Shown in pieces: positions 17,349 through 38,969 of a DNA stretch of 64,000 bases. How positions within the stretch are numbered: position 1 is the stretch's first letter; every line of letters starts with the position of its first letter. Under the pieces are notes generated by a model that ran no database searches, was not told where the DNA came from, and saw only the letters and a list, made by a program, of their open reading frames with translations. The position numbers were made by a program, and so were the translations under genes. The DNA lies in sequence record LR588166.1. One strand, written 5' to 3'.

Positions 17349-18464
17349 ATGGCTAAAAAAGAAAACATCGTAGAAACATATCTTCGTCCGACGGAGTGTG
17401 CTGCAATTATCCGCGGCATGTTCAAGGCGAAGCGTCCTGTGTTCCTCTGGGGTCCGCCGGGGGTAGGCAAGTCGGATATCATCGCCCAGTTGGGTTTCGA
17501 GGCTGACCGTCCGGTCATCGACATGCGTCTGATCCTCATGGATCCCACTGATATTAAGGGCATTCCGTACTACGATCCGAAAACCAATACCATGCGCTGG
17601 GCTATTCCGTCCGATCTTCCGCAACCCGGCGAAACTACCCTGGACAACGCCATCCTGTTCCTGGACGAAATGAACTCGGCGCCGGCGAGCGTTCAGGGCG
17701 CTGCATATCAGCTTATCCTGAACCGTGCCATCGGTTCGTATAAGCTGCCCGATGGCGTCGACATTGTCGCTGCTGGTAACCGCGATACCGACAAGGGCGT
17801 TACTTATCGTATGCCTAGTCCGTTGGCCAACCGTTTCGTTCACTTGCAGATCGAAACCAACTTCGAGGACTGGCAGCAGTGGGCGCTTAACAACACGGTA
17901 CACCCGGATGTAGTCGGCTACCTCACTCAGCACAAGCAGAACCTGTTCTGCTTCGATCCCCAAGATCGTAGCAAGGCGTTTGCTACTCCGCGAGCCTGGA
18001 AGTTCGTGTCCGACATCCTCCAGCTCGCAGGAATCAACAAGGACCACCTGCTACGTGCGACTATCGCAGGAACCGTCGGCGAAAGTCACAGCTACTCCTT
18101 CATGCAGCACATGAAGTATGCTTCGCAGCTTCCGAAGCCGGAAGATGTACTAACCGGCCGGGTAACCGATCTCAAAGTCGAAGAGATCAGTGCTCGTTAC
18201 TCGCTCGTGGTCAGTATGTGCTACACTCTAAAAGAGTGGCTGGCTGACGTAGCTGACGCCGACAAAAAGTACACTACCGAGGATTGGCACAAGTCGGTAA
18301 ACTTGTTCTTCGAGTACATGATGAACAACTTTGCCCAAGAAATGGTCATCCTCGGCGCGCGTACTGCGTTGCGCGAATACCAACTGCCGATCAACAGAAA
18401 GTTGATCCCTTGCTTCACTAAGTTCTTCCAAGAGTACGGCAAGTTTATTGTCGACTCGAACTAA
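17349..18464 (+). CDS. MoxR-type AAA+ ATPase
   Basis: Walker A GPPGVGKS, Walker B LFLDE, AAGNR, PLANRF. GC-rich codon usage. Confidence 0.92.
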   Translation: MAKKENIVETYLRPTECAAIIRGMFKAKRPVFLWGPPGVGKSDIIAQLGFEADRPVIDMRLILMDPTDIKGIPYYDPKTNTMRWAIPSDLPQPGETTLDNAILFLDEMNSAPASVQGAAYQLILNRAIGSYKLPDGVDIVAAGNRDTDKGVTYRMPSPLANRFVHLQIETNFEDWQQWALNNTVHPDVVGYLTQHKQNLFCFDPQDRSKAFATPRAWKFVSDILQLAGINKDHLLRATIAGTVGESHSYSFMQHMKYASQLPKPEDVLTGRVTDLKVEEISARYSLVVSMCYTLKEWLADVADADKKYTTEDWHKSVNLFFEYMMNNFAQEMVILGARTALREYQLPINRKLIPCFTKFFQEYGKFIVDSN

Positions 18465-18472
18465 GTAAGGGC

Positions 18473-18505
18473 AAAATAAAAGGGGCTTAAAGCCCCTTTT
18501 ATTTT
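18473..18505. terminator. Bidirectional terminator
   Basis: AAAATAAAAGGGGC-ttaaa-GCCCCTTTTATTTT. Confidence 0.85.
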
Positions 18506-18533
18506 ATATATTCATAGGATACAGAATTATAGA

Positions 18534-18989
18534 ATGAGAACACTAACTTCATCTTTGTTTGTCATTATAATGACATTAGTAAATATCCTTTCTGTAATAT
18601 ATATGTATGTTACTAATGTGCCATTAATTTATATGCTTGTTGCATTTCCTAATCAGTGTGTTATATTATTAATTTCCTGTGTATACAGAAAAATCATAGC
18701 AGAATTTTTTTATATAAAGAGATTTAGTTTTTATAAACTAGAAGTCGTTTTAGATAAGCAAAGAGGGAGCTCAACAAAATATATTTTAAAATTAAATGTA
18801 TTAGGCGAAACATATTATTTCGATTTTCATGACAATTCTTTTTGCTGTCTTCCTATTTATGCAAATTTATATACTAATTCAGAATCATTGGCACTTAAAA
18901 CATTTCAAAATTATGAAGACCAAGCTGAGCTATATAAAAAGAGCAGCGCCATTACTACTGTAATAAAATCTAGTAAAGGTACTAAGTAG
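18534..18989 (+). CDS. Membrane-anchored hypothetical protein
   Basis: Two N-terminal TM segments. Confidence 0.6.
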   Translation: MRTLTSSLFVIIMTLVNILSVIYMYVTNVPLIYMLVAFPNQCVILLISCVYRKIIAEFFYIKRFSFYKLEVVLDKQRGSSTKYILKLNVLGETYYFDFHDNSFCCLPIYANLYTNSESLALKTFQNYEDQAELYKKSSAITTVIKSSKGTK

Positions 18990-18990
18990 T

Positions 18991-19443
18991 ATGAGACTTC
19001 CGTTCAGTAACATATGTTTAATATTAGTACCTTTATTTGCTGTATTGATTACTATATGTATTATTCTAGAATACCAAGAACATGTAGTACTGGCACTAGT
19101 AATAATACCTTTATTAGTATGTGTACTGTCTGCCAGTATATGCGGGATTGCGATATTGTTTTATTTGATGATTCTCTGCGAAATATCGGAAAATAAATAT
19201 TTTACTTCATTCGAAATAGAAGCTATAAAAAGAAAAGGTAAACCTACATTATATTTTATAAAAAAGATATGGCTGTCCGAAATATTTTATTTTAATACAA
19301 AACAAAATAGATTTTCTATAAGAAGACACATACATAGTTCGTATGATTCATTGGAAGAAGCACTAAACGAAATAGAACATATATATAAACAATACACAGA
19401 GACAGAATATAATAAAGTTGTGTTTAAAAAAGGAAAAAATTAA
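18991..19443 (+). CDS. Membrane-anchored hypothetical protein
   Basis: Two N-terminal TM segments, C-terminus resembles the neighbours. Confidence 0.6.
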   Translation: MRLPFSNICLILVPLFAVLITICIILEYQEHVVLALVIIPLLVCVLSASICGIAILFYLMILCEISENKYFTSFEIEAIKRKGKPTLYFIKKIWLSEIFYFNTKQNRFSIRRHIHSSYDSLEEALNEIEHIYKQYTETEYNKVVFKKGKN

Positions 19444-19444
19444 T

Positions 19445-19798
19445 ATGATCGTCAGCGAGATTATATATTCTATTTTCATAGCTGCATTAATAACAGTTAT
19501 GACTATACTATATATAAGTCTCAGAATAATAACATGTAAGATATTAAATAAGTCATTAAAGATTTCAGCTAATGTAATTATATATGGTACCTCTAATATA
19601 GAATATGTATATATTCCTGAAATAAAATATAAATTTCTTTCTTTTAAAATAACACATTCTGGTTTAGTTATGTTTGACAGAGAGTTTGGATTTAGGACAC
19701 TAAACGATGCCATAAATGCATTAAATATGTATGTAGACACCGATATTATAAAAATAGTATATAAAAAGGTACCCACATTTTATACTTGGCACGAATAA
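19445..19798 (+). CDS. Membrane-anchored hypothetical protein
   Basis: N-terminal TM segment, ATG 19445. Confidence 0.6.
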   Translation: MIVSEIIYSIFIAALITVMTILYISLRIITCKILNKSLKISANVIIYGTSNIEYVYIPEIKYKFLSFKITHSGLVMFDREFGFRTLNDAINALNMYVDTDIIKIVYKKVPTFYTWHE

Positions 19799-21294
19799 TG
19801 GATAATTTTGATATAGAATTAAAAGAACTCATAAAAAATACAAATCCTAACGCATTAGGAAATGTAGTAAAAAGTAAAAAAGAAATATATGAGGAATTAG
19901 TTCGTCGAACTAATTCCTTTCTTCGTGACGACGTTTCTGTAACAGAAAGGATTCATATATACTTAAATCCGGCTGATAATGTTTACTGTAAGTATGATAA
20001 CAAACGGACACTAAAGCGAAATAAAGATACAAAACAAACCCAATACGGATTTTGCGGAAATAAAAGTAAATGTAAATGTCATATGGAATGGTCTTTAAAA
20101 AATCATCCAGGCATGACACAATCCGGAAAAGAAAGTATGAAAACAAAGAGGATAAAAACTTGGATAGAAAAATACGGTGTCGATAATCCATCTAAGTCAA
20201 AAGATATTATTGCAAAACAGCAATTAAGTAAAAAACATATAAAGCCAGATCATAGAACTATAAAGGAACTGGGATATAAAAAAGTAGTAGAACGACTTTC
20301 TAACATACTCACCCCTACGTTTAGTATAGACGAGTACGAAGGGTGCTTTAGAAAAAATGTGTATGACTGGGTATGCAATGCATGCGGAAATATAGTTATC
20401 GGACACGTAGATTATGGGTCTACTCCGAGGTGCAATGTTTGTAATCCTATAACAAAGTCTGCCGGCGAGAATGAAATATCTAACTATATAGTATCGCTAG
20501 GATTTGATGTGATTAACAATGACCGAACTATATTATCTAACAAAGAATTAGATATAGTAATTAAAGGTACAAACATAGCAATAGAATATAATGGTTGTTA
20601 TTGGCATTCTACAAAACACAGAAAAAAATCATATCATGTAGATAAATTTATAGAATGCAGAGATAAAGGAATAAAGTTAATACAAATTTTAGATGTAGAT
20701 TGGATATCAAAACAAGACATAATAAAATCAAGGTTAAAATCTATTTTAGGTTGTAGTGATAGAATATATGCAAGGAATACAACTATAAAAGAAATAACAT
20801 TTAAAGAATCTTTAACTTTTTTAGAAGAAACTCACATCCAAGGTTCTTGTCAATCATCTGTAAGACTAGGCCTATACGACAGTGAGAATATGTTAGTAGC
20901 AGTAATGACATTTGGGAAATCTAGATATACAAAAGAGGAATATGAATTACTTAGATATGCTAGCAAAAATACTGTTGTAGGAGGAGCCAGCAAACTTCTT
21001 AAATATTTCATAAAAACATATTCCCCTAAATCTATTATTACATATGCAGACAGGTGTTGGTCAGATGGAAATTTATATAAACAGCTCGGGTTTACAAATG
21101 TAACTAAGAATGACAGAAATACAGGATATTGGTATATAAAAGACAACATAAAATATCATAGATCTAATTTCATAAAATCTAAGATTTCTAATAAAAATAA
21201 TTTACATCTAAGCGAATCAGAAATAATGGATAGTTTAGGTTATTTAAAATATTACGATTGCGGCAATTACAAATATACATTGCAGGTACGCTAG
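19798..21294 (+). CDS. Putative homing endonuclease, paralog of 2270..3952
   Basis: CxxC motifs, ELDIVIKGTNIAIEYNGCYWHS, RIYARNTTIKE, VVGGASKLLK, ITYADRCWSDGNLY and DCGN all match the first copy. Confidence 0.8.
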   Translation: MDNFDIELKELIKNTNPNALGNVVKSKKEIYEELVRRTNSFLRDDVSVTERIHIYLNPADNVYCKYDNKRTLKRNKDTKQTQYGFCGNKSKCKCHMEWSLKNHPGMTQSGKESMKTKRIKTWIEKYGVDNPSKSKDIIAKQQLSKKHIKPDHRTIKELGYKKVVERLSNILTPTFSIDEYEGCFRKNVYDWVCNACGNIVIGHVDYGSTPRCNVCNPITKSAGENEISNYIVSLGFDVINNDRTILSNKELDIVIKGTNIAIEYNGCYWHSTKHRKKSYHVDKFIECRDKGIKLIQILDVDWISKQDIIKSRLKSILGCSDRIYARNTTIKEITFKESLTFLEETHIQGSCQSSVRLGLYDSENMLVAVMTFGKSRYTKEEYELLRYASKNTVVGGASKLLKYFIKTYSPKSIITYADRCWSDGNLYKQLGFTNVTKNDRNTGYWYIKDNIKYHRSNFIKSKISNKNNLHLSESEIMDSLGYLKYYDCGNYKYTLQVR

Positions 21295-21308
21295 CATAAT
21301 GTTATACT
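21280..21308 (+). promoter_or_regulatory. Sigma70-type promoter for the VWA gene, overlapping the end of the endonuclease ORF
   Basis: TTGCAG-17 nt-TATACT with TG extension. Confidence 0.65.
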
Positions 21309-21349
21309 TGTAACGTAACACAAAACATATCATTTTAACGGAGCATTAT

Positions 21350-22534
21350 ATGTCCACTAAAACCCTAGAAGAACGCATCATCCGCGCCCGTGTTCAGTTG
21401 CTGTTGAACCATCCGTTTTTCGGGACCTTGGCGCTGCGCCTTAAACTAGTCGAGGCGAACGACTGGTGCCCTACTGCCGGTACTGATGGACGCCATCTTT
21501 ATTATAATACCAAGTTCCTCGAAGACTTGGACGATAAGGAACTTATCTTCCTCATCGGTCATGAGGTAATGCACGTCGTCTACGACCACATGGGGCGGCG
21601 CGGCAGCAGAGAGCCTAAACTGTGGAACTGTGCTGCCGACTTTGTTATCAACCTCGAATTGCACGATATGAAGATCGGCAAGCTTATCCACCGTCCGGGT
21701 ACTTGCGAGCCGTGCTTTGATGAAAAGTACCGCGGAATGTCCGCTGACCAGATCTATGAACTAATTAAGAAAGACCCGTCACTAAAAGATAAAGATAGCT
21801 TCGACGTTCACCTCGAACCCGGTGGTGCCGGGAATGAAGACGGCGATGCCTCTGGCAAATCCGGTCCTATCCCTATGTCTGCAGATGAGCAAGCTGCTCT
21901 TCGGGACGAGATCACTGAAGCTGTTCTTCAGGCTGCTAAAGCTGCTGGCGTCGGCAACACTCCGGCAGGTGTGCGTCAGATGATCAGTGACATCACTGAA
22001 CCTAAACTAGATTGGCGCGAATTGCTAAACCAGACTATTCCGTCGCACATTAAATCCGACTATATGTGGACTCGTCCGTCGCGGAAGAGTTGGGGAACTG
22101 GTGCTACTCTGCCGGGTCAGATTGTCGATGACAAGATCGATGTTATCCTAGCACTAGACGCCTCTGGTTCGATTAGCTCTTCTCAGCTAAGGGATTTCTT
22201 AGGAGAAGTGCTAGGAATTATGGAACAGTTTAGTGACTTTTCCATACAAGTGCTAACGTTTGATACTAGAGTGTATGAATTCCGAAAATATACTCCCGAC
22301 AATGCAGACGAAATCTATGAGTATCCCCTTAAAGGCGGCGGCGGTACCGATTTTGTGGCTGTGTTTAACTTCCTTAAGGATACGCTCACTGAACCGCCAC
22401 ATCAGCTAGTATTCTTCACTGACATGGAAGTGTATGACTACGGCGATCCTAACTATTGCGATACTGTGTTTATAAACCACGGTCGCAAAGGTGTAACTGC
22501 ACCGTTTGGTATCACCATCGACTACGACGAATAA
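21350..22534 (+). CDS. VWA-domain protein with an N-terminal HExxH metallopeptidase-like domain (MoxR partner, DUF2201-like)
   Basis: TAGTDG, GHEVMH, WNCAADFVIN, MIDAS-like DASGS and GGGGTDF. GC-rich codons. Confidence 0.88.
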   Translation: MSTKTLEERIIRARVQLLLNHPFFGTLALRLKLVEANDWCPTAGTDGRHLYYNTKFLEDLDDKELIFLIGHEVMHVVYDHMGRRGSREPKLWNCAADFVINLELHDMKIGKLIHRPGTCEPCFDEKYRGMSADQIYELIKKDPSLKDKDSFDVHLEPGGAGNEDGDASGKSGPIPMSADEQAALRDEITEAVLQAAKAAGVGNTPAGVRQMISDITEPKLDWRELLNQTIPSHIKSDYMWTRPSRKSWGTGATLPGQIVDDKIDVILALDASGSISSSQLRDFLGEVLGIMEQFSDFSIQVLTFDTRVYEFRKYTPDNADEIYEYPLKGGGGTDFVAVFNFLKDTLTEPPHQLVFFTDMEVYDYGDPNYCDTVFINHGRKGVTAPFGITIDYDE

Positions 22535-22545
22535 TCGTAGGTTAA

Positions 22546-22579
22546 AACAAAAAAGGGGCTTATAAGCCCCTTTTTTGTT
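22546..22579. terminator. Bidirectional terminator
   Basis: AACAAAAAAGGGGC-ttataa-GCCCCTTTTTTGTT. Confidence 0.85.
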
Positions 22580-22580
22580 G

Positions 22581-22739
22581 ACTAGTTTTAGCTACTTAAA
22601 GCGCTGTAGCATAGCTGTATACAAGCGCTAAATTAGCGCAAATTTGCGTGTTTTTATGCTTTACAATACATAGCTAATACTACGCATGCAAAACGCGCTA
22701 TAGCGCAAATTTGCGTGTTTTAAGCACATCTACTATACT
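22581..22739 (+). promoter_or_regulatory. GA/TC/GG/CC-free tract with a 21-bp direct repeat and a promoter
   Basis: No GA, TC, GG or CC in 22581-22729. TAGCGCAAATTTGCGTGTTTT at 22634 and 22701. TTGCGT-17-TATACT at 22711-22739. Confidence 0.8.
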
Positions 22740-23113
22740 TTTTATTTTGCATTGTATTTAATGCACAAGGACAGTATTGTATGCTTGTTTGTGTCAAATA
22801 AGACAATTAAATGTTATGTTACATTATCTTCCAGTTATACTATTCGTTTATTTTATAGGAAACATATTATCATTGTTTTTATATAATGTAGTATCATACA
22901 GCACACTATTTCCATATAGTATGTTACACAAACAAAACCACAAGCAAACTCTGTTTCATAAATTTATAAAAATGTGGTGGTTTTCTTACTTAAATGTTAT
23001 TGTACTCAGTTGTGCTTGCATATATGTAATAGGCAAAAAATATATAAAGAGAATTTGAAATATTATAAAGATTTTATTAAGATTATGATAAATTTAATAT
23101 AGAACTAATTTAT

Positions 23114-23144
23114 AAAATAAAAGGGCGTTAAGCCCTTTTATTTT
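23114..23144. terminator. Bidirectional terminator between convergent units
   Basis: AAAATAAAAGGGC-gttaa-GCCCTTTTATTTT. Confidence 0.8.
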
Positions 23145-23150
23145 AATCAA

Positions 23151-23471
23151 TTATTCTATTTTTGCATGAATAGTACATAGCATATTGTGATATGCTTCTT
23201 GGTATTCAGATTCTAGTTTAATCATATCTAAGTAGATAAAAATAGCCTCTATTTTGCCTAACTTAGACAACCGTTCATCTTTTTTGCTCTTAATTAGATT
23301 TCCTATAAACTGTCTGTCAAATTTATTAACAGAACCGTTTTCACAAATAACTTCTACATAATCTACATAAGAAAGATGTAAATCGTCTAAGCTTATGCTA
23401 GGCAGAAATTCTTCTATATCAAACGAAATCCCCTCTTGTTCGGGGAGTTTTTTAAGATAGATTTTGGCCAT
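23151..23471 (-). CDS. Hypothetical protein
   Basis: GGAG RBS on the minus strand. Confidence 0.7.
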   Translation of the reverse strand: MAKIYLKKLPEQEGISFDIEEFLPSISLDDLHLSYVDYVEVICENGSVNKFDRQFIGNLIKSKKDERLSKLGKIEAIFIYLDMIKLESEYQEAYHNMLCTIHAKIE

Positions 23472-23637
23472 ATATGCTACTCCGTTCTATGCATATAGAT
23501 ATTTAGCAATTATACAAAAATGCATAGTTTTAATAGCACACACAAACACGATGCAGCGTATTAGTTAGTTTTATTACCAAGCAAAATTGTGCATTTTTTG
23601 CCCAAAAAAACAGCCCTAGCTAGGGCTGTTTTGTTAG

Positions 23638-23877
23638 TTAAAGCTTTTCTAAAACAAGTGTTAGCGCATCTTCTCCTATATTAAAGTGCTGTGTCGCACT
23701 AACATGACAAAACTTGCCATATATATCTAATGCAGATATTACAACATCTTCAATAACTTTTTCTATCATTTCACTAGTATCTTTACATCTACATTTTAGT
23801 GTAATGTTATCCATAGTTTCTTCAATGGATATAATATTAATGCCCTTTACTTCTAAAGCTTCTTTTATTTCTTGCAT
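23638..23877 (-). CDS. Hypothetical protein
   Basis: ATG at 23877 follows the upstream stop, terminator hairpin at ~23604-23632. Confidence 0.6.
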   Translation of the reverse strand: MQEIKEALEVKGINIISIEETMDNITLKCRCKDTSEMIEKVIEDVVISALDIYGKFCHVSATQHFNIGEDALTLVLEKL

Positions 23878-23878
23878 T

Positions 23879-24619
23879 TTACTCCGCGCGAGTGGAATCG
23901 CGCTCAAGTTTTTGAGAAACCTTAAGTTCTAATTCCTCAACGGCCTTAGCTTTGCTTTCTTCTAGTAAAGCTCTAGCCTTTTCTTCTTCTCGTTTCTGCC
24001 TAGCTTCCCTGCGCTTTTCCTTACGTTTTTCTAGGCGCTCTTTGTAACGTTCTTCCAGTTCTTCTTCTGTAAGTTCGCGCTGGCGCCCTGGCGCTGGTTT
24101 TAGTTCAGGACATAAAGAATATGCAAGCTCTAACTTTGCATCAGCCTCTTCTTTAAGCAACCGTGCTTGAACTATAAGACCTTCTGCTCGTTGTTTATCA
24201 GTAATAGATTCTTCAACTACAGGTACTGATGCAGTTTCTGTATGTACAGGGTCGGCACCTGCTAATGCAGCTTCACGTATCTGAGAATTAATAAGTTCTA
24301 AAGCAACATTAGTACCTGGGTACGGTTGCATAAAAACCTGTCTAACTTCCACTTTGCGTAAAAAAGACCGATCATGCATTGTACGAAGTGCAGGCAATCC
24401 GTCACCTAAAAGTTTATTATTCAGGACAGTATACAAATCGACAGAATTTTGTCCTTCTCTACTTTCAACTATAGTTTTTAGGTTATCTTGGTACATGTCT
24501 GGTAGTCTATCTATTTCAACTACTAAACAATGAGTAGGATCATCGGGTAATTCCCGGAACACGACATACACACGTGTTCCGGTATTAGCGATTTTCCCTA
24601 TGTGGCGCTTAAGACTCAT
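23879..24619 (-). CDS. Hypothetical protein with a charged coiled-coil C-terminus
   Basis: 246-aa ORF, GGAG RBS. Confidence 0.8.
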   Translation of the reverse strand: MSLKRHIGKIANTGTRVYVVFRELPDDPTHCLVVEIDRLPDMYQDNLKTIVESREGQNSVDLYTVLNNKLLGDGLPALRTMHDRSFLRKVEVRQVFMQPYPGTNVALELINSQIREAALAGADPVHTETASVPVVEESITDKQRAEGLIVQARLLKEEADAKLELAYSLCPELKPAPGRQRELTEEELEERYKERLEKRKEKRREARQKREEEKARALLEESKAKAVEELELKVSQKLERDSTRAE

Positions 24620-24636
24620 TAGGAAATCTCCGTGTA

Positions 24637-24909
24637 TTATTTGGCTTCAGTTTCAGCTTCTTGCTCTTCTTGTTTAGGTTCAATTGCTGATACAAAAGAT
24701 TTAACTTTACTAAACACTCCACCGACGCTGGCCATTTCTTCTGCGCGGAATGCTCCGCGTTGGCATGCAACATCAACTATGGTTAGTAAATCTTTAATGT
24801 CTTGTACACCTAGACGAGGTTCTTCGCTTGCTTGTTCAGTCATATTCTCTTGATCTACAACTTCTTTTTCTACAACTTCTTTTTCTACAGCTTTAGCTTT
24901 CTTAGCCAT
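24637..24909 (-). CDS. Hypothetical acidic protein
   Basis: GGAG RBS, overlaps the end of the HNH gene. Confidence 0.75.
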   Translation of the reverse strand: MAKKAKAVEKEVVEKEVVDQENMTEQASEEPRLGVQDIKDLLTIVDVACQRGAFRAEEMASVGGVFSKVKSFVSAIEPKQEEQEAETEAK

Positions 24910-25504: not shown

Positions 25505-25531
25505 TTATAAACTACACAGTTATTTATCTTT

Positions 25532-31039: not shown

Positions 31040-31261
31040 ATGGCAAACGTAATTAAAGAACTTCATCCTATTAAAGGATATTGCATAGTTGTGCGTCATC
31101 CAGGCGATACTAGATTTAGCTGGGTATCGCTAGATAATCAATATATTTTGGTAGACAATCCAGTATTTTTAAATGATGAATTTGACAATTGTAAAAACGA
31201 ATGGCCGGATGCTGAAATAAAAATAGTAGAAGTATATATTGTCCCGGAGAAGGTGTTATGA
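31040..31261 (+). CDS. Hypothetical protein (paralog of the next ORF)
   Basis: YCIVV...SWV...IKIVEVYIVPE. Confidence 0.7.
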   Translation: MANVIKELHPIKGYCIVVRHPGDTRFSWVSLDNQYILVDNPVFLNDEFDNCKNEWPDAEIKIVEVYIVPEKVL

Positions 31262-31476
31262 ATGCTATATCTAAAATATCTCCGTCTAAATGTTATACTG
31301 TCGTAGTTACAGATAATAATTGGAAATCATGCACATGGGTAAATTATCATGATTCTCCGGTTGTAGAATACGATATTTCTAAAATATCACCTATATTGGA
31401 ATCTTGTAAGAAAAAGTTTGGCAATAGTAATGTAAGGGTAATGGAAATATATTTAGTACCGGAAAACTTTTTATGA
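31258..31476 (+). CDS. Hypothetical protein (paralog of the previous ORF)
   Basis: YTVVV...TWV...VRVMEIYLVPE. Confidence 0.7.
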   Translation: MNAISKISPSKCYTVVVTDNNWKSCTWVNYHDSPVVEYDISKISPILESCKKKFGNSNVRVMEIYLVPENFL

Positions 31477-31682
31477 AAATTCGTTATATATTACTATTAA
31501 TATTATCAGACTTACAAACACTAGTAAAGGTACAGGCATTTTTATTTGCATTGCTTCCCTGTGTTATTTTGTTTCTTCCTGCATCGTTCTTTATTACATT
31601 AGTTATAACAATTGCCATAGTATGGATAATAAGTTTACTATCTTATTTGCTTATTAATAAACTGATACAAACGAGGAGCTAA
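31473..31682 (+). CDS. Small membrane protein
   Basis: Hydrophobic, ATGA overlap. Confidence 0.6.
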   Translation: MKIRYILLLILSDLQTLVKVQAFLFALLPCVILFLPASFFITLVITIAIVWIISLLSYLLINKLIQTRS

Positions 31683-31684
31683 AA

Positions 31685-31882
31685 ATGGCAGGTCTAAGAA
31701 AATGCATTGATGAATTCTGCAAAGGATGCATCTATGATCCCGAGTCTTCCGGTAGTTGGCGCCAACAAGTAGAAAATTGTAGTGCTAAATCATGCGAACT
31801 ATGGGAAGTTCGCCCTGTTTCGGTAGGAACTAAACAAGAAAGAATTATTGCAAAACAAAAAAGTTCACAAGAACTTGCGTAA
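31685..31882 (+). CDS. Small Cys-rich protein
   Basis: GAGGAG RBS, CxxxCxxC...CxxxxC. Confidence 0.75.
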   Translation: MAGLRKCIDEFCKGCIYDPESSGSWRQQVENCSAKSCELWEVRPVSVGTKQERIIAKQKSSQELA

Positions 31883-31918
31883 GACAGCTAACCAACCTAA
31901 CTCTAGGTTAACCCTAGG

Positions 31919-31947
31919 TTGACTCATTTGTTGGATAGCACTATACT
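31919..31947 (+). promoter_or_regulatory. Sigma70-type promoter
   Basis: TTGACT-17 nt-TATACT. Confidence 0.7.
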
Positions 31948-31985
31948 TGTAGCATGTTTAAAAAACATAGCTAGGAGTAGCATTT

Positions 31986-33140
31986 ATGAGTCAGATGTAC
32001 GTAACTATCACTAATGGAATGTACCGTAACCAGCAAGTAAACGGCACATTCCTTTTACTCGAAGATGTGAAAGTTACTGGGTCGGGAAAACGAGTTATTA
32101 ACGTATTAGGTGCATTGCCGGAATGGTCTCAACATAAATGTAGAGTTACACTCGGTAATGACGCAACAGTACAGTATTCGAACGAACAAGGAGAGGTTTT
32201 AGATTTGCCTAATGTTATACGTCCTTTTGTGGGCGAAAATAATAATAATGTTCCTGCATCTAGTCGCGGTACAGTGTATGAAGGCACCGCAGTAGAAATT
32301 GACTACGAAAAACAATACCAGCAACTAGAATCCGAAAACGATGCAATGAATCGTATCAAACGGACTTTTGAGATTGTAAATGAACTAACAGAGGCTGCCG
32401 CGGCAGGCGAAATCCGTTCTATGATCATCTCCGGTCCTCCCGGAATCGGAAAAAGCTTCGGCGTAGAAGAAACACTAAACAGGTGTTTCTTGTTGGATAA
32501 AATTAAAGATAATAAAGAACCGTTTGAGATCGTAAAGGGCGCTGCAAGTGCAATTGGTGTTTACCAAAAGCTTTACGAATTTAAAGATAAAGGTAAAATC
32601 CTTATTTTCGATGATTGCGACCGCGTACTATTTGACGAAGATAGTCTAAATCTCCTTAAAGGTGCATTAGATACTACTAAGCGTAGAACTATTTACTGGC
32701 TTAGTGAGTCCCGCGTTTTAAAAGAAAATGATATTCCACCTAAATTCGATTTCGAAGGTAGTGTAATTTTCCTTACTAACCTTAACTTCGAGGATACAAA
32801 GTCCCGAATCGGAAGGCACCTAGAAGCAATTATGTCCCGGTGTCATTATTTAGACATGGAAATTAGTAGTACGAGAGATCAGATCCTTCGTATTAAACAA
32901 GTTGTGCGCGACGGGATGCTTAGTAAATATGAATTTAATAACGGAGAAGATGAAGAAATCCTAGAATATATTATCGATAATCAGAATGATCTGCGAGAAC
33001 TTAGCTTGCGTATGGTAATTAAAATTGCCGATCTGATTAAATTCAAAAAAGATGGTTGGCGAGAATATGCAGAGACAACTGTACTGAAACGGAATGCAAA
33101 ATTCCGGCGGCTGTATAACGAAAAGTACAGTGATATTTAA
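31986..33140 (+). CDS. P-loop (AAA-like) ATPase
   Basis: ISGPPGIGKS and ILIFDDCD. Confidence 0.88.
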   Translation: MSQMYVTITNGMYRNQQVNGTFLLLEDVKVTGSGKRVINVLGALPEWSQHKCRVTLGNDATVQYSNEQGEVLDLPNVIRPFVGENNNNVPASSRGTVYEGTAVEIDYEKQYQQLESENDAMNRIKRTFEIVNELTEAAAAGEIRSMIISGPPGIGKSFGVEETLNRCFLLDKIKDNKEPFEIVKGAASAIGVYQKLYEFKDKGKILIFDDCDRVLFDEDSLNLLKGALDTTKRRTIYWLSESRVLKENDIPPKFDFEGSVIFLTNLNFEDTKSRIGRHLEAIMSRCHYLDMEISSTRDQILRIKQVVRDGMLSKYEFNNGEDEEILEYIIDNQNDLRELSLRMVIKIADLIKFKKDGWREYAETTVLKRNAKFRRLYNEKYSDI

Positions 33141-33183
33141 TACACAATAAAGTAGCAAGGATGCTACTTTCCGGAGATACGGT

Positions 33184-33741
33184 ATGAATCATTGTGTTAG
33201 GTTTGCTTTTTTAGATAGAAATATAAAAAGTTCTATAACAACGTTTATAGTTATACCTTTAATTCTTACTTCTGTAATATATTTCCTTTTTTCAGAACAA
33301 AATGTGTGGCCAGCGTGTTTTTATTTTGTCACTATGCTTATAATTTTGTTTATTGCAGAACTAGCAGCGTGTTCATCTGGAAATTTTTTTAATTGTGCTT
33401 TAAGTATATTCTCTATTTTTAGAAATATTGGTCACTTTGATACAACTTGGAAAATAACAAATGATGGTTTTATTTATTCTTTAAAAGATAACGAAACTAT
33501 ACACATCTTTGTAAATAAAAACGGTGTATATTTACATAATAATGGAAAATTTATTTATGTAGATAATGTTAAAAATACTAAAATAGATTTATCTAAACTG
33601 TCTCACCCGGTATTTATATTAATAACATTTTACCTAAAACATAAACTCAAAGAAGATATGATACTGGCAGATTTATACGGATCAGTAAGTTCTAGTGTAT
33701 TCATGAATGATGAAGATTTTCAAAAATTATACAGACGCTAA
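33184..33741 (+). CDS. Membrane hypothetical protein
   Basis: Two TM segments. Confidence 0.6.
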   Translation: MNHCVRFAFLDRNIKSSITTFIVIPLILTSVIYFLFSEQNVWPACFYFVTMLIILFIAELAACSSGNFFNCALSIFSIFRNIGHFDTTWKITNDGFIYSLKDNETIHIFVNKNGVYLHNNGKFIYVDNVKNTKIDLSKLSHPVFILITFYLKHKLKEDMILADLYGSVSSSVFMNDEDFQKLYRR

Positions 33742-34117
33742 AAAATATCTAAATACGTTTGTTTCTTGTAAACCAGAACAAACAGATATGCATAGTGTAT
33801 TAAATGGATATCAAAATTATTGTATATTCTCGTGTTTAATAGATTCTGCACAAAATTTAATAACAACTAAATTTTCTGATACTAATACTAATTCATACGA
33901 ATGGATTATTTCATACAAAGAAAATAATAAAAATATAACATATTCTGTTGAAAACAAACCAGACATCCTAAAGAATAACGGGTTGTCTGTTGCCTTTATT
34001 GTATGTAGGGCAAAAATAGTGTATACTAATAAATTAACAGAATTTGGTAAAACTAAATTAAAAGAAAAAAGAAATATTCTGTTAATAGACAGAGATAAAG
34101 AAAAACTAAAAATATAA
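33707..34117 (+). CDS. Hypothetical protein
   Basis: Colinear ORF. Confidence 0.55.
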   Translation: MMKIFKNYTDAKKYLNTFVSCKPEQTDMHSVLNGYQNYCIFSCLIDSAQNLITTKFSDTNTNSYEWIISYKENNKNITYSVENKPDILKNNGLSVAFIVCRAKIVYTNKLTEFGKTKLKEKRNILLIDRDKEKLKI

Positions 34118-34119
34118 CC

Positions 34120-34986
34120 ATGAATAGTATAATTATAAAAACAAAAAAAGATCTTTTATACGAAACAACACTGTCGAATTTAGGATTTATAACAACTACT
34201 ATACAAGTAGGTGATATAGTAGAGTTCGATAAAATAGAAGAAGAACTTAATTCTAAAGATTTCTTTACTGCTTTTGTACGTACATCTACTCATTTTCAAT
34301 ACGAAATAGCAAAACTTTGTGCTTCGAGATGTAAAATTGTTTTCATAGACATAAATGGTTTTAGATCGGCACAAGAATGGGAAGATATTAAAAAAGAATT
34401 TCCGTATACTAGATTTATTTTATTAAAAAATAATATGTGGAATTCTAATATTTCTGATTTTAAAAAATTAATGCCAGACACAAAGGCAATTAATATAAAA
34501 TGTCTTAATAAAAACAAATTAAATTCTTTAGATTACTGGAACACAATTAAGGGTTTTTCGTTCGGCGGAACAAGCAGAGATATATTGCCTCATTTACTAA
34601 GTATATTTGTTTTATTAAATGATGATTTTGCAGAATCTGTAGCAACAGAGACAATATTAAAACGTAATTTGTCATTATCAGATATAAAAAAATATATACC
34701 GGGTCCTGGTTTAATTTATGATGTAGACGATTATTTTAATGTGTCGTATCAATCTAAAATAATATGTAATTTAGAAGCTGACTGGAAAAGTAATAAAACT
34801 GATGTAAAAAATATAGAATTCATTTTAAATGACGATACTAGTAGTTTATTCGATATAGATTATAATGAAGAATCATCATACTCTCGGATGATATCTAACT
34901 GTGTACAAAATTTAAGTAACGAAGGATTTTGGAGTTATCATTATTTAATAGATGAATGGATACTTAAACAAATAGAGAATTTATAA
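34120..34986 (+). CDS. Divergent oxidoreductase-like protein (Gfo/Idh/MocA-like)
   Basis: FGGTSRDILPHLLS and LEADWK. No intact GxGxxG. Confidence 0.45.
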   Translation: MNSIIIKTKKDLLYETTLSNLGFITTTIQVGDIVEFDKIEEELNSKDFFTAFVRTSTHFQYEIAKLCASRCKIVFIDINGFRSAQEWEDIKKEFPYTRFILLKNNMWNSNISDFKKLMPDTKAINIKCLNKNKLNSLDYWNTIKGFSFGGTSRDILPHLLSIFVLLNDDFAESVATETILKRNLSLSDIKKYIPGPGLIYDVDDYFNVSYQSKIICNLEADWKSNKTDVKNIEFILNDDTSSLFDIDYNEESSYSRMISNCVQNLSNEGFWSYHYLIDEWILKQIENL

Positions 34987-35888
34987 TGAAGGTCCGTTAT
35001 TTTCATCCCATAAACAATGTATTCGAAGAAACAGTATGGGATAAGCCCGATATAAAAAATACAGAAATTGAAGTTAAAACAAAATATGTAGGTGTTTCCA
35101 ATAATGATTTAAATGTAATTTATAACCAAACACCTTATGCTAGTAACAAATATGGTTGTGAAAGTGTAGGTATAGTAACAAAAGTTGGATCTAAAATTAC
35201 TGACGTAAAAGTGGGAGATTTTGTAGCCACAACTACGAATCATTTATATTCAGATTTTTATAATTGTAAAACAGAAGAATATGTAAAAATCCCTAAATGT
35301 TCTCCTAGATATATTTTAGAACCAATTGCTCGATCATTAAATTTAATAACACAAAATTGGAACAAATTCGTAGAGTTAAATAGAAACGAAGGTAAAATAC
35401 TTATTCTAGGATCTGGTTTTGTTGCATCTGTACTGTATACTGTCTTAACAAAAGAACACGATGTTGATCCTAATAGAATATATGTTGTTGGATCTCATAA
35501 TAAATCTATCTTTAATAAATCGTTGTATAATACTCTACCGATTCACTTGTATGACATAGTGTTTGATCTGCAGGGTTTAAACACACCCTTAACAAATAAT
35601 ATATTGAATACGAATTCCTTATTAATAATAGGTGCCGCAGGTAAACCAACTTTAATAGATTTAAATCTATTAGCACATAAATCTGTTACAATAAATTTCC
35701 CTAGTCCCGATAATAATAAATTTTACGAATCATTAAATGATGCATGTAGAATAGTAGAAACTAAAATCTTTGATCCTAATAAATTTTGGACTAAGGGATA
35801 TAAAAGAGACACTGAATGGAAAAGTGCATTCAGTATAGGGATTAATCGCCCGAAACATTATAATTATGGTTATATTATTTGGAACTAA
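34986..35888 (+). CDS. Divergent Zn-dependent alcohol dehydrogenase (MDR)-like protein
   Basis: GCESVGIVTKVGSKITDVKVGDFVA, LEPIA, ILILGSGF. Confidence 0.7.
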   Translation: MKVRYFHPINNVFEETVWDKPDIKNTEIEVKTKYVGVSNNDLNVIYNQTPYASNKYGCESVGIVTKVGSKITDVKVGDFVATTTNHLYSDFYNCKTEEYVKIPKCSPRYILEPIARSLNLITQNWNKFVELNRNEGKILILGSGFVASVLYTVLTKEHDVDPNRIYVVGSHNKSIFNKSLYNTLPIHLYDIVFDLQGLNTPLTNNILNTNSLLIIGAAGKPTLIDLNLLAHKSVTINFPSPDNNKFYESLNDACRIVETKIFDPNKFWTKGYKRDTEWKSAFSIGINRPKHYNYGYIIWN

Positions 35889-35890
35889 CA

Positions 35891-36403
35891 ATGGATAGAA
35901 AAGAAGTAATTTATTTTATAGGAACAGAAGTCGAACATACTCCAGTATACGGTGAAAAAACACTTTTTGTTGCTGGTCCCCAAGATGGTGACGAAGTAGT
36001 AAGCAATGCACTGAAACATAACTGTAAACATATATATTTCGGTGCTAACCAAAGTTTCCCTCTACACAAAATAGATATAACAGAAGTAATTAAATGGAAA
36101 CAAATGATACTGCATTGTTTAAATAAAGGATTTTGGTGTACTTTAGATTTCGATATATGCAATTCTTCTGCAATTTTAGAAATGGATTTATCTAAGTATG
36201 ATAAATTTATTCCTATTATAAGTGCAAAAATACCAAATATATCCGAATACAATAAAAACACTATATTAAAGATAGATGATATAGGTTTTGATGAAACTAA
36301 CGAAGGCGTATGGTGTCATAAGTTAAACGATTTAAAAGATAATACCGTACATACTAGCTGGGACAAATATACAGGAGATATTTCAATTGACGAAAAAAAT
36401 TAA
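35891..36403 (+). CDS. Hypothetical protein
   Basis: Coupled to the dehydrogenase-like pair. Confidence 0.75.
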   Translation: MDRKEVIYFIGTEVEHTPVYGEKTLFVAGPQDGDEVVSNALKHNCKHIYFGANQSFPLHKIDITEVIKWKQMILHCLNKGFWCTLDFDICNSSAILEMDLSKYDKFIPIISAKIPNISEYNKNTILKIDDIGFDETNEGVWCHKLNDLKDNTVHTSWDKYTGDISIDEKN

Positions 36404-36692
36404 TTATAGCAAAGTATATGAACCGAAAGGCGCACTATATAGAATTCGTCGCATTTCTGACGGTGCATTTAGCACAGGGTCTTCCAGTCCGGCGTTTGTA
36501 ACTTCTGGTCCGGGAAAAGTATTCAATACTTTAGGTAAACTTAGATCTCATCTTACTACTATTCGTAATAACCCGGTTTTACAAGACATATACAACGAAT
36601 GTGAAATTGTTCAGTATGTAGAAGCTGACCAGCCAACATACACTCTAGCTGAACACACAGAATTACTTATACTTAAAAAGTTAACACAATAA
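36387..36692 (+). CDS. Hypothetical protein
   Basis: TTG start, overlapping the upstream gene. Confidence 0.6.
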   Translation: MTKKINYSKVYEPKGALYRIRRISDGAFSTGSSSPAFVTSGPGKVFNTLGKLRSHLTTIRNNPVLQDIYNECEIVQYVEADQPTYTLAEHTELLILKKLTQ

Positions 36693-36796
36693 CGCGCTTT
36701 ACTGCGCGTTAATTTGCGCGTATGCTGCAAAAACATGTAACACTAGAGCTTATATACGCTTATGCTTAAAAAGCTGTATAACGCAATTTATGCGTT
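36661..36796. promoter_or_regulatory. GA/TC/GG/CC-depleted tract with hairpin
   Basis: Single GA (36746) in 136 bp. AACGCGC/GCGCGTT hairpin at 36691-36710. Confidence 0.7.
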
Positions 36797-37232
36797 CCTT
36801 AACGAAGTTGCTTATATAAAATATATAAGATTCTATGTCTTCTTTAAATGTGTTCATAAACATCATCTATCGGAAATACTTCTGTTAAGTAATTTAGCAG
36901 GTACAACTATAGGAGCATATAGATTTGAACGTCTCTTAAGCATGGATTATTGCACTATATCGATTGACATGCCACTCGACGAGGATTATTTTATTGCCTG
37001 TAATACAAAAGGAATTATTTCTGTAGCAAAATGTAATCTCATATCAATGAATTTTTATGATTTTTGTACACAATTATCAAACTATTACTTTTTTAAATAC
37101 GACAATACACTGAATGGTTCGTTTTTTGTGTATCCATCCAAAAATTATTTAGTACATCCAGAAGTAATATCTTATATAAAGAAATATAATAATGAGAGTT
37201 TATATAAAAGAACAACGTATTTGCCGGGGTAA
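36762..37232 (+). CDS. Hypothetical protein
   Basis: ORF, start uncertain because it lies in the biased tract. Confidence 0.45.
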   Translation: MLKKLYNAIYAFLNEVAYIKYIRFYVFFKCVHKHHLSEILLLSNLAGTTIGAYRFERLLSMDYCTISIDMPLDEDYFIACNTKGIISVAKCNLISMNFYDFCTQLSNYYFFKYDNTLNGSFFVYPSKNYLVHPEVISYIKKYNNESLYKRTTYLPG

Positions 37233-37431
37233 TGCCGAAATATATGATATTGTTATCAGACAGGAAGGTTATTTAGAATTTCTAGAAGAAACAGAAACAG
37301 AATACACAGGATTTCTAAATGTTGTTAACATATACAAATGCTCTGATGGGTATCAAAAACGAATTCATACAACAAAACAGAAGTTTTCTTTTCCGAAAGA
37401 TTCTGACGAAATACTTATAATAGAATTATAG
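37192..37431 (+). CDS. Hypothetical protein
   Basis: Colinear ORF. Confidence 0.55.
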   Translation: MRVYIKEQRICRGNAEIYDIVIRQEGYLEFLEETETEYTGFLNVVNIYKCSDGYQKRIHTTKQKFSFPKDSDEILIIEL

Positions 37432-37441
37432 GAATTTCTGC

Positions 37442-38008
37442 ATGACTACAACTGAGGCAACTCTACTTAGTCTCGCTATCGCTGTAAGTTGTATGGTAGC
37501 AGACATAATGTATTCTAAAGAATTTGAATACATTTCTAACCTTAAACTAAAAGAAGAAAAACTAAAAGAAGAATTTGCTATAAATGATGAAGATAAAATA
37601 AAATCATATATAGCGCTGTGTAAAAGAAGAAAGAATTGCAGGGCAGTAGCAGAAGCAATATATTATGAAGCGCGTAGTGAATCTAGGATCGGAATGCAAG
37701 GTGTAGCATTTACGATATTAAATAGAGCCATGAATCCTACTAGATGGCCCAACACTCCGTACAGCGTAGTTTACTATAAATGCCAATTTAGTTATACCTG
37801 CGACGGCAGTAGAAAACAAGGTTTTAAAGAAAAAGATAAATGGGATTTAGCTAATATAGTAGCATATAGGGCTATAAATAGACTATCTAGTGACCCAACC
37901 AACGGCGCCGATCATTATTATGCACCGCACAGAGTAAGTAAACCGTATTGGGCAAAGAAAATGAGAAAAACTGCCAAGTTAGGTAATCATGTGTTTTATA
38001 AATCGTAA
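37442..38008 (+). CDS. SleB-like cell wall hydrolase (Hydrolase_2)
   Basis: AIYYEARSE, GVAFTILNR, WPNT, QFS, DPTNGADHYY, LGNHVFY. Confidence 0.9.
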   Translation: MTTTEATLLSLAIAVSCMVADIMYSKEFEYISNLKLKEEKLKEEFAINDEDKIKSYIALCKRRKNCRAVAEAIYYEARSESRIGMQGVAFTILNRAMNPTRWPNTPYSVVYYKCQFSYTCDGSRKQGFKEKDKWDLANIVAYRAINRLSSDPTNGADHYYAPHRVSKPYWAKKMRKTAKLGNHVFYKS

Positions 38009-38252
38009 TGAGGATTATACCATGGTATGTAAAACAATAACAAAAGAAATGTTTGAAATGCAATATAATATAAGAAACTATTCTACCATTGCTCATATAT
38101 ATATTAGCACAAGAGCAAATATAATAGAAATATATTATAAAACCCCGTTTAACCAGGGCATAGTATTGCAAAATTATTACGTTAACGAAGAATGCGACCA
38201 ATATATACAGTCTTGTAGATTATATAGGGAATATGAAAAAAATAGAATATAA
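37989..38252 (+). CDS. Hypothetical protein
   Basis: GAGGA RBS suggests an internal ATG near 38022. Confidence 0.55.
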   Translation: MCFINRNEDYTMVCKTITKEMFEMQYNIRNYSTIAHIYISTRANIIEIYYKTPFNQGIVLQNYYVNEECDQYIQSCRLYREYEKNRI

Positions 38253-38535
38253 AATAAATCTTTTAATTGAAGAAATAAAAGAGTTTAAAAGAACAAAAAA
38301 GGAACTCAATGAAGACCTAATGCAACATTATACAAAGTTCTATTCAGAACAAGTTAAAGATGTTTATTTTAGATCTTTAAATTTTAGACGAAATTCTGTA
38401 AAACAACTTATTAAACAATTGCATACCGTATGCAAACAAGCTAAAATAAAATTACTTTATATTAAAGCTAAGTCTTCAACTAAACAGCAGCAGAGGCAAA
38501 AATGTAATAAAGTAAACGTAACTAGACGAACATAA
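38233..38535 (+). CDS. Hypothetical coiled-coil protein
   Basis: Colinear ORF. Confidence 0.55.
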   Translation: MKKIEYKINLLIEEIKEFKRTKKELNEDLMQHYTKFYSEQVKDVYFRSLNFRRNSVKQLIKQLHTVCKQAKIKLLYIKAKSSTKQQQRQKCNKVNVTRRT

Positions 38536-38551
38536 TATTTTGCGCTATACT
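38523..38551 (+). promoter_or_regulatory. Sigma70-type promoter
   Basis: TAGACG-17 nt-TATACT. Confidence 0.6.
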
Positions 38552-38609
38552 GTATATCAAGCTAAGAAGCTTAACAAACAACATTAATACAACCGAGAGG
38601 TAATTTGCA

Positions 38610-38969
38610 ATGGCAAAAAGCTACGAAGAAGCATGGGCACTGGCAGAATTTCCCGAGCACTCGAAGGTCGTCGATGGTCAAGTCGGCGGCGTGACCGAAT
38701 ACGTTCTCCAGGAAATCGACTCCTACTGCATCGTCGACAAGGACGGCAACAAGGTGTGGCTGAACATTCAGGGCAACATGCACCGCTTGCTCGGTCCGGC
38801 CACCCACATCAACGGGAAAAAGAAAAACGCCTGGGCAGTGGACGGTGACATCATCCGCACCTGGGATGAATACGAAAAAGCCGTCGGCGACCGGGTGCCG
38901 AAAGAGCACATTATGATGCTCAAGCTTCAACACGGCGACGATCAGTTCGAGTTCGACACCGACGACTAA
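38610..38969 (+). CDS. GC-rich early protein with an HRxxGPA motif
   Basis: GAGGT RBS, HRLLGPA, own promoter and terminator. Confidence 0.85.
   Translation: MAKSYEEAWALAEFPEHSKVVDGQVGGVTEYVLQEIDSYCIVDKDGNKVWLNIQGNMHRLLGPATHINGKKKNAWAVDGDIIRTWDEYEKAVGDRVPKEHIMMLKLQHGDDQFEFDTDD

Follow-up and report, generated by a model that had tools for sequence, protein, structure and literature searches.

Host-like codon usage in three GC-rich genes of the AT-rich Pseudomonas phage vB_PaeM_MIJ3, and its probable maintenance by selection

Codon-usage classes of phage T4 genes were reportedly tied to the time of expression by Cowe and Sharp in 1991. Codon-usage classes tied to expression time have been described in 14 phages (Mioduser et al., 2017; PMC5683454). 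A second model, as relayed by the PA5oct paper, holds that phage-encoded tRNAs compensate for codons that are common in the phage and rare in its host (Bailly-Bechet et al., 2007). At the gene level, a MoxR/metallopeptidase-vWA pair is typical of the group 2.2 jumbo phages, and a chaperone role in the assembly and processing of virions has been proposed for it (Iyer et al., 2021; PMC7824862); composition and codon usage do not occur in the text of that paper. The subject here is a 64,000-nucleotide stretch of sequence record LR588166.1, termed the window, in which such a pair and a gene for a 119-amino-acid (119-aa) protein form three GC-rich islands in AT-rich DNA. It is considered likely, with a probability of roughly 0.6, that selection maintains host-tRNA-friendly coding in these three genes, which appear to be separately transcribed into abundant RNA.

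Positions 17000-23000 of the window match Pseudomonas phage vB_PaeM_MIJ3 (LR588166.1) at 100% identity by megablast, and ten other PA5oct-like records (Wroclawvirus) match the same region at 98.5-98.8%. Whole-genome comparisons were made with the sister genome PA5oct as a stand-in for MIJ3. The host is P. aeruginosa, with a GC content of 66% in PAO1 against 33% in the phage (PA5oct paper), and this bears out the GC-rich host that a first-pass annotation had deduced from the letters of the window, of which 31.5% are G or C. PA5oct-like phages (PA5oct, Paride, Callisto) are candidates for phage therapy and serve as models of jumbo phages that form no nucleus. How a genome of 33% GC is translated in a host of 66% GC is a standing puzzle, and the Paride paper has no material on codons or on phage transcriptomics.

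Composition and codon usage of the three genes

The islands encode a MoxR-like AAA+ ATPase, a metallopeptidase-VWA protein (VWA below) and the 119-aa protein (Table 1). Their GC content at third codon positions (GC3) stands against about 0.22 nearby, and the anomaly is real and far beyond chance. Relative to the 33 other open reading frames (ORFs) between 8 and 32 kb of the window, the z-scores of GC3 are 12.9 for MoxR and 8.4 for VWA. Genes adjoining the islands have GC3 values of 0.19-0.28 and contain 5-33 ATA and 5-21 TTA codons each, with AGA also heavily used. A GC3 of at least 0.45 is reached by just six of the 377 PA5oct ORFs outside the early region, namely the three island genes, two spurious ORFs that overlie tRNA genes, and ClpP (0.45). 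The first and second codon positions of MoxR and VWA (GC1 0.55-0.58, GC2 0.38) have the values of orthologs in phages of any GC content, and thus the compositional anomaly is synonymous. A further GC bump at 23.5-25 kb, with a gene on the minus strand (23879-24619), stems from amino acid composition (GC1 0.63); this gene was ruled out as a fourth island, its GC3 being only 0.27.

Table 1. Features of the window (window coordinates equal LR588166.1 record coordinates minus 124000).
Feature	Coordinates	Strand	Basis or composition
Promoter-like element before MoxR	17275..17302	+	TTGTTT, 16-nucleotide spacer, TAAAAT; read by eye, unlisted by generic scan
MoxR-like AAA+ ATPase (MIJ3_00177 = PA5oct gp335)	17349..18464	+	GC 0.532, GC1/2/3 0.55/0.38/0.67; ATA 0, TTA 0, AGA 1
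Intrinsic-terminator-like hairpin after MoxR	18479..18500	+	terminator scan
AT-rich four-gene insert between MoxR and VWA	18534..21294	+	GC3 0.19-0.22
Hef/MTES_1575-type homing endonuclease, last insert gene	19798-21294	+	PHROG 3339 homing endonuclease, E 3.7e-115
Promoter-like element before VWA	21280..21308	+	TTGCAG, 17-nucleotide spacer, TATACT; by eye; in endonuclease 3' end and spacer
Metallopeptidase-VWA (MIJ3_00182 = PA5oct gp340)	21350..22534	+	GC 0.489, GC3 0.52; ATA 2, TTA 1, AGA 2
Intrinsic-terminator-like hairpin after VWA	22546..22579	+	terminator scan; 15-pair stem, T-run
Promoter-like element before 119-aa gene	38523..38551	+	TAGACG, 17-nucleotide spacer, TATACT; scan 9/12, alone not above chance
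119-aa gene (MIJ3_00210 = PA5oct gp371)	38610..38969	+	GC 0.550, GC3 0.75; ATA 0, TTA 0, AGA 0
Hairpin after 119-aa gene	39001..39028	+	9-bp stem, 5-nucleotide loop, T-tail; by eye, unlisted by scan
tRNA cluster, 12 genes	50830..55049	+	ARAGORN
TilS-like PP-loop protein	60632..61243	+	Pfam ATP_bind_3, E 1.7e-36

The first-pass annotation had called the three genes GC-rich and had counted, by eye, no ATA, no TTA and one AGA in the 371 codons of MoxR and none of these codons in the 119-aa gene, with heavy use of them in neighbouring genes. Codon tables reproduce all of this, the MoxR counts exactly. The broader claim, that the islands avoid codons read by the phage's own tRNAs, is also upheld. 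TTA, ATA, AGA, GGA, CCA, ACA and TCA together account for 1.1% of the codons of MoxR and 3.1% of those of VWA, and not one of the seven occurs in the 119-aa gene; in PA5oct's AT-rich bulk their share is 17.8%. All three genes appear to be written in host-friendly codons.

The tRNAs found by ARAGORN are Leu-TAA (two), CAT (three), Arg-TCT, Gly-TCC, Pro-TGG, Thr-TGT, Ser-TGA, Asn-GTT and Ser-GCT. This is the set previously read from the sequence, with Asn-GTT and Ser-GCT as additions. Seven are U34 tRNAs, for TTA (two), ACA, AGA, CCA, GGA and TCA, and these are accompanied by the three CAT tRNAs. The PP-loop protein of Table 1 is called TilS in the MIJ3 paper, and such a TilS-like protein would convert CAT tRNAs to readers of ATA. 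The first two CAT tRNAs (50830-50906 and 51311-51387) are identical at positions 8 to 66 and differ in their acceptor stems; with their identical core they are candidates for Ile2 substrates of TilS. The third (53441-53517) has a C1/A72 mismatch, as in initiator tRNAs.

At third positions the share of A is 0.11-0.17 in the islands against 0.39 in the bulk, and that of T is 0.09-0.32 against 0.39. The islands thus lose A-ending codons more than T-ending ones. A-ending codons cognate to phage tRNAs are depleted beyond GCA, GTA, CTA and CGA, with an odds ratio of 0.17, and the same ratio holds in L024, a metagenomic contig that is described below. The GC-rich genes imported into the early region of the phage show the same ratio of 0.17. 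Cognate-codon depletion is therefore simply host-like usage, and none was found beyond it.

T-ending codons are treated differently from one amino acid family to another. The islands keep CGT, GGT, GCT and ACT and have lost CTT, CCT and TCT. The T-ending share in Arg/Gly/Ala/Thr boxes relative to Leu/Pro/Ser/Val boxes is 0.41 vs 0.20 in the MIJ3 islands, 0.38 vs 0.08 in L024, and 0.37 vs 0.08 in MoxR and VWA of Pseudomonas phage RWG; the same comparison gives 0.19 vs 0.25 in the imported genes and 0.35 vs 0.32 in the L024 background. Phage Atu_ph07 has the pattern reversed relative to the Pseudomonas-type phages. The preferred codons of four-fold boxes in the islands are CGT, GGT, GCT, ACT and CCG, and among two-fold codons those ending in C are favoured (AAC 0.88, CAC 0.83, ATC 0.71). 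Family-specific retention of T, combined with the preference for C in two-fold codons, resembles the outcome of translational selection on a tRNA pool of the Pseudomonas type rather than that of plain GC pressure. An expression-related codon axis has been described in P. aeruginosa (Grocock and Sharp, 2002, as discussed in PMC3002238).

Selection would keep the synonymous sites of the three genes in a state well decoded by the host's own tRNA pool. The avoided codons TTA, ATA, AGA, ACA, CCA and TCA would need rare host U34 or lysidine tRNAs, and these are what the phage supplies. The islands being nearly free of such codons, P. aeruginosa ribosomes would be able to translate them quickly with the phage tRNA/TilS module either active or inactive.

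Locus, homologs and persistence of the shift

The MoxR-like protein scores 24 bits against Pfam AAA_5 (cut-off 22) and 21.1 bits against AAA_3, under the cut-off of 27. Its close relatives bear PF07726 and PF07728, and it matches PHROG 1297, ATPase, with an E value of 1.9e-94. The protein is of the AAA_3/AAA_5 (MoxR/dynein-related) type and has a VWA partner. The partner has the DUF2201 metallopeptidase-VWA (Sll7028-like) architecture, with Pfam DUF2201_N at residues 8-247 (E 6.3e-43) and the VWA-like DUF2201 at residues 265-390 (E 3.8e-19). Public labels for the metallopeptidase-VWA protein conflict and include 'DNA repair ATPase', 'HNH endonuclease', 'homing endonuclease' and 'Zn-dependent hydrolase'; PHROG 1314 labels it an HNH endonuclease, where Pfam gives DUF2201_N and DUF2201. 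Two records named 'Campylobacter phage' (MG065644.1 and MG065635.1; A147 and C12, 137-143 kb) match MoxR as rV5-like coliphages do, at 29.9-30.2% identity over the same span, and may be mislabelled.

These are the two proteins of the pair of Iyer et al. (2021), in the same order, and that paper's examples from Atu_ph07 (ASV44729.1 and ASV44728.2) are among the orthologs compared here. MoxR and VWA would thus form a chaperone/co-chaperone pair of the group 2.2 type. Their genes adjoin each other in Phosso, Atu_ph07, 121Q, XaC1, Serratia BF and KP13-7. Unlike the published pair, that of MIJ3, PA5oct and L024 is interrupted by a four-gene insert with a homing endonuclease, which sets the two genes 2.9 kb apart in MIJ3. 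The gene order in Phosso and Atu_ph07 is DNA polymerase, queE (annotated only in Phosso), PolI/RNaseH, glutaredoxin, MoxR, VWA and RNA ligase, and the backbone of the window has the same order. Judged by this synteny, the MIJ3 pair is in its ancestral place within the replication module, split by the homing-endonuclease insert.

An endonuclease-sized gene is found at the same place in L024, in contig L026 and in Vibrio phage 2.275.O. Hef/MTES_1575/DUF7487 homing-type genes lie between or beside MoxR and VWA in L024 (8071-10938), L026 (8462-9934 and 11296-13134) and a further locus, L017 (7369-8880). The presence of homing-type genes at the pair in several distant phages suggests a recurrent homing site.

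No near-identical copy of the three genes was found in any donor; among 5.8 billion proteins, MoxR has a best non-self match of 70% identity and the 119-aa protein one of 67%. Beyond the 11 PA5oct-like records, the best matches of MoxR and VWA among cultured phages have 40-42% identity; VWA shares 38-42% identity, over 98% of its length, with proteins of group 2.2 jumbo phages, and no cultured-phage homolog was found for the 119-aa protein. The 119-aa protein also has no family or function in Pfam, PHROGs or the protein atlas. Homologs of its gene, at 63-67% identity, lie on four short metagenome contigs, where they have a GC3 of 0.75-0.86 and flanks of 37-42% GC. On present matches the gene is confined to this phage group, apart from two metagenomic relatives.

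Within the group, the three proteins are 99.5-100% identical across 11 isolates, with MoxR at 100% in all 11. MIJ3 and PA5oct differ at 11 synonymous sites in MoxR, 16 in VWA and 6 in the 119-aa gene, and at no non-synonymous site (33 to 0 in total), against 434 synonymous and 260 non-synonymous differences in the background. The island proteins are under purifying selection. The synonymous counts of 11, 16 and 6 are no lower than the 10.0, 10.6 and 3.2 expected, and therefore there is no sign of very strong constraint per site.

The 70% match of MoxR sits on the 12.2-kb contig L024, which is collinear with window positions 10865-22531, insert included. Amino acid identity between L024 and MIJ3 is 70% for QueE, 73% for RNaseH, 70% for MoxR, 46% for the endonuclease and 63% for VWA. 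In L024, too, MoxR and VWA are shifted, with GC3 values of 0.80 and 0.70 in a background of 0.39. Codon identity at identical amino acids is near that of independent draws (observed/expected 0.41/0.39 for VWA, 0.43/0.40 for RNaseH and 0.58/0.49 for MoxR), and thus the synonymous sites are saturated. At the same identical amino acids, GC3 in MIJ3 and L024 is 0.66 and 0.79 for MoxR and 0.50 and 0.70 for VWA; RNaseH (0.19 and 0.44) and QueE (0.18 and 0.37) are at the background of each genome. A neutral relic of transfer would have decayed, and the GC3 shift is therefore maintained. By this comparison of sequences, codon bias is held at synonymous sites over a long divergence in MoxR and VWA, and likewise in the homologs of the 119-aa gene. 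The three would accordingly be counted as old, conserved phage genes, with MoxR and VWA as core genes.

The shift recurs in other phages. Relative to local background, the GC3 of MoxR/VWA is shifted by +0.21/+0.20 in Phosso, +0.21/+0.15 in Atu_ph07, +0.22/+0.15 in SCTP-2, +0.17/+0.07 in KP13-7, +0.17/+0.06 in 121Q, +0.14/+0.10 in XaC1, +0.13/+0.05 in Vibrio phage 2.275.O, +0.10/+0.09 in RWG, +0.08/+0.04 in Bacillus phage G, +0.04/+0.02 in Serratia phage BF and -0.05/0.00 in rV5. Across 18 metagenomic loci besides L024, it ranges from +0.00 to +0.17 for MoxR and, in 13 loci, from -0.04 to +0.11 for VWA. In 29 of the 30 loci besides MIJ3, MoxR lies above the local median of GC3, and the shift is about zero in rV5 and contig L026.

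Transcription, timing and alternative explanations

A promoter and a terminator of its own had been assigned to each island in the first-pass annotation. Terminator-like hairpins do follow all three genes, and -35/-10-like elements before MoxR and VWA are conserved in L024 (TTGCAA, 16 nucleotides, TAAAAT before MoxR; TTGCGC, 17 nucleotides, TAAAAT before VWA). The promoter assignments as a whole stand less firmly, as a generic sigma-70 scan finds promoter-like sites no commoner than in shuffled sequence. L024 has terminators both before and after MoxR. All three genes have a strong Shine-Dalgarno sequence and A-rich codons two to four. The start regions of MoxR (17330-17351) and VWA (21338-21352) are nearly identical: in each, a Shine-Dalgarno sequence, GAGG or GGAG, precedes CATTAT and the ATG.

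At the RNA level, contigs of four public RNA-seq runs from one 2020 study were compared with window positions 17000-22900. The insert is covered by long single RNA contigs (e.g. 18403-20994 and 18912-21142), and MoxR and VWA by many short ones. Contigs break at both ends of both genes (17274-17330, 18382-18445, 21342-21426 and 22516-22577), and low-depth contigs stop at 17274-17330 in three runs. MoxR and VWA thus appear as RNA units separate from the insert. The listed contigs of the two genes have a word depth several-fold to about 30-fold over that of the long insert contig, and in summed bin depth the gap is far larger. Contig depths are too poor a measure to rank genes, and they may carry a GC bias. 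At most, they are indicative of abundant MoxR and VWA RNA.

Translation on the host tRNA pool would be the selective agent in the preferred reading, with high expression of the three genes as a probable setting. Several points weigh against this reading. Contig-based RNA depth may carry a GC bias, and the PA5oct authors themselves suspected an unexplained bias in their RNA-seq. The 29 of 30 loci in which MoxR is shifted are not phylogenetically independent. The shift is weakly correlated with the GC gap between host and phage (rho 0.54, p 0.07, n=12; rho 0.40 without MIJ3), and it is small in Serratia phage BF and XaC1 despite their GC-rich hosts. The designation of CGT, GGT, GCT and ACT as host-optimal draws on a pattern shared by three Pseudomonas-type phages and on general knowledge. 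Finally, the most abundant late proteins, capsid and sheath, keep AT-rich codons, and thus high expression alone does not explain the choice of the three genes.

The proposal made with the first description of the islands was a translational timer, in which three immediate-early genes run on host tRNAs and the AT-rich bulk is held back while phage tRNAs and TilS build up. This is judged unlikely as it stands, and it is possible chiefly for the 119-aa gene (gp371). The split in phage-tRNA codons between bulk and islands agrees with it, and so do the RNA data, in that MoxR and VWA contigs are deeper than those of their neighbours in all four runs, which differ about 100-fold in phage depth. A link of the 119-aa gene to early expression comes from the numbering of PA5oct genes. 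In the literature on PA5oct, a 2019 preprint and a 2020 paper name 'gp450' as the sole early gene outside the early cluster, and this label is unchanged since the 2018 preprint, though every other number shifted in the later paper. The SleB hydrolase, gp447 in the preprint, is now gp368; by this shift, old gp450 becomes gp371 of the current numbering, which is the 119-aa gene, or else a direct neighbour of it. The 119-aa gene is therefore probably the early 'gp450' of these papers in the old numbering, and not the present gp450.

For MoxR and VWA, the term immediate-early is not supported. In the 2018 preprint, old gp388-418 belong to the middle phase and rise further late; these correspond to about new gp311-341, which span DNA polymerase to VWA. 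In addition, gp335 (MoxR) is flagged in the PA5oct record as detected in virions by ESI-MS/MS (tandem mass spectrometry with electrospray ionization), and the pair is a proposed assembly chaperone. The PA5oct paper counts 7 of the 93 products detected in virions as virion-unrelated enzymes, and it is a guess that gp335 is one of the seven.

The reported early region of PA5oct, gp34-gp105, bears on the timer in several ways. ORFs with a GC3 of at least 0.45 are 16-fold enriched there (13 of 62, against 6 of 377 elsewhere; Fisher p 4e-8). This enrichment was dropped as support for the timer, since the genes look like recent imports. Block gp53-57 has nucleotide matches of 88-99% in about 187 other Pseudomonas phage records, and among the matches listed (e.g. 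YMC11/07/P54, vB_Pae_CF23a) the phages are 29-53 kb in size. The block also varies among PA5oct-like isolates, being 24-73% covered in others, and one other GC-rich early-region gene has an Ead/Ea22-like domain. On these matches, the GC-rich early-region genes look like recent imports from phages that are taken to be temperate, and not like adapted genes. In PA5oct, at positions 7500-38900 (e.g. 15500-18500), the GC-rich early-region genes of the terminal repeat (gp35, gp53-57, gp80, gp86-87, gp98 and others) form a mosaic.

The remainder of the early region is telling as well. AT-rich ORFs (GC3 < 0.33) number 33 of 62, with 15.5% of codons cognate to phage tRNAs, and they are described as strongly transcribed at 5 min (PA5oct paper). 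With about half of the early region AT-rich, early translation would not wait for phage tRNAs, and the claim that the AT-rich bulk does so is weakened in its strict form. Taken whole, the early region is less dependent on phage tRNAs than the rest (11.0% against 17.5% cognate codons), which fits the timer. Early genes as a class are not host-adapted, given the 33 AT-rich ORFs and the imported nature of the GC-rich ones; the three island genes do have a codon usage distinct from that of the genome and directed away from phage-tRNA codons.

A looser form of the idea can be put forward, equally tentatively. A small, conserved jumbo-phage gene set led by MoxR and VWA may be kept by selection for full-speed translation on unmodified host tRNAs before, or without, the phage tRNA-TilS module, which would pace the bulk; this would amount to a codon bootstrap or timer across group 2.2.

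A different possibility, and a rather improbable one, is that GC is selected for reasons other than decoding, such as transcript stability against AU-directed RNases or escape of gene bodies from the MvaT/MvaU-type silencing that acts on AT-rich DNA, or that the signal is partly a library artefact. The clearest direct signal is indeed at the RNA level, with contig breaks and depth steps at the GC boundaries. The phage relies on host RNA polymerase throughout infection (PA5oct paper), and the PA5oct authors, besides the bias already mentioned, saw a few regions dominate the transcriptome. Plain selection for GC does not predict the amino-acid-family-specific codon pattern, which is common to Pseudomonas-type phages and reversed in Atu_ph07, nor does it sit well with the several-fold difference in contig depth between MoxR (53% GC) and VWA (49% GC), which are similar in GC.

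Foreign origin without selection, by which a GC-rich phage or bacterium contributed the 119-aa gene and a MoxR-VWA cassette, perhaps through homing-endonuclease co-conversion, without amelioration so far, is close to refuted: the atypical composition, the homing endonucleases beside or inside the pair in several phages, the import of the genome's other GC-rich genes from temperate Pseudomonas phages and the equal depletion of cognate codons in relative synonymous codon usage (RSCU) would suit it, but no donor above 70% identity is known, the syntenic position is ancestral and common to Phosso, Atu_ph07 and SCTP-2, the proteins are conserved in 11 isolates among which the imported genes vary, the shift persists past synonymous saturation while flanking orthologs have re-equilibrated, and DNA polymerase, capsid and sheath genes also adjoin homing endonucleases yet are not GC-rich. 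Recent transfer, which the first-pass annotation had offered as its alternative and would have seen in near-identical copies on the host chromosome, is excluded for the three genes: identity peaks at 63-70%, presence in close relatives is not patchy, and collinear relatives on AT-richer phage contigs share the shift.

Significance and comparison with known systems

Three genes that are probably held by selection in host-friendly codons, while about 450 others use AT-rich codons and phage tRNAs, are marked as special. They offer a way to ask at what time, and to what extent, each class of genes relies on the tRNA/TilS module of the phage, and they point to the MoxR-VWA pair as one that faces unusual demands on expression in many jumbo phages. 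The GC-rich genes of these genomes can also be sorted by origin, into a core probably maintained by selection and recent imports from temperate phages, and the distinction matters for annotation and for the published RNA-seq landscape.

Expression-linked codon heterogeneity in tRNA-carrying phages is already known. The amplitude seen here, its long-term maintenance and its recurrence at MoxR-VWA across jumbo phages appear to be undescribed so far. Within the genome, the islands resemble the imported early-region 'morons' in being GC-rich, in their host-like codons and in an equal depletion of cognate codons. They differ from these in that no donor is known for them, that they do not vary between isolates, that their synteny extends to diverged relatives, and in their T-ending pattern.

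The islands also resemble the temporal classes of T4 and of Mioduser et al. (2017), in that one class of genes fits the host tRNA pool and the other uses phage-tRNA codons. In MIJ3, by comparison, the host-fitted class is tiny, with three genes, and the contrast is extreme (GC3 0.5-0.75 vs 0.22). Early expression is plausible for just one of the three, and most genes of the early region do not belong to the host-fitted class. With respect to the model of Bailly-Bechet et al. (2007), to the extent that it is relayed by the PA5oct paper, the MIJ3 tRNA set fits well, as it matches codons that are abundant in the bulk and rarest in host-like genes. That model, so far as it is relayed there, takes the genome as one pool; in MIJ3, a few genes seem to be kept independent of the phage tRNAs.

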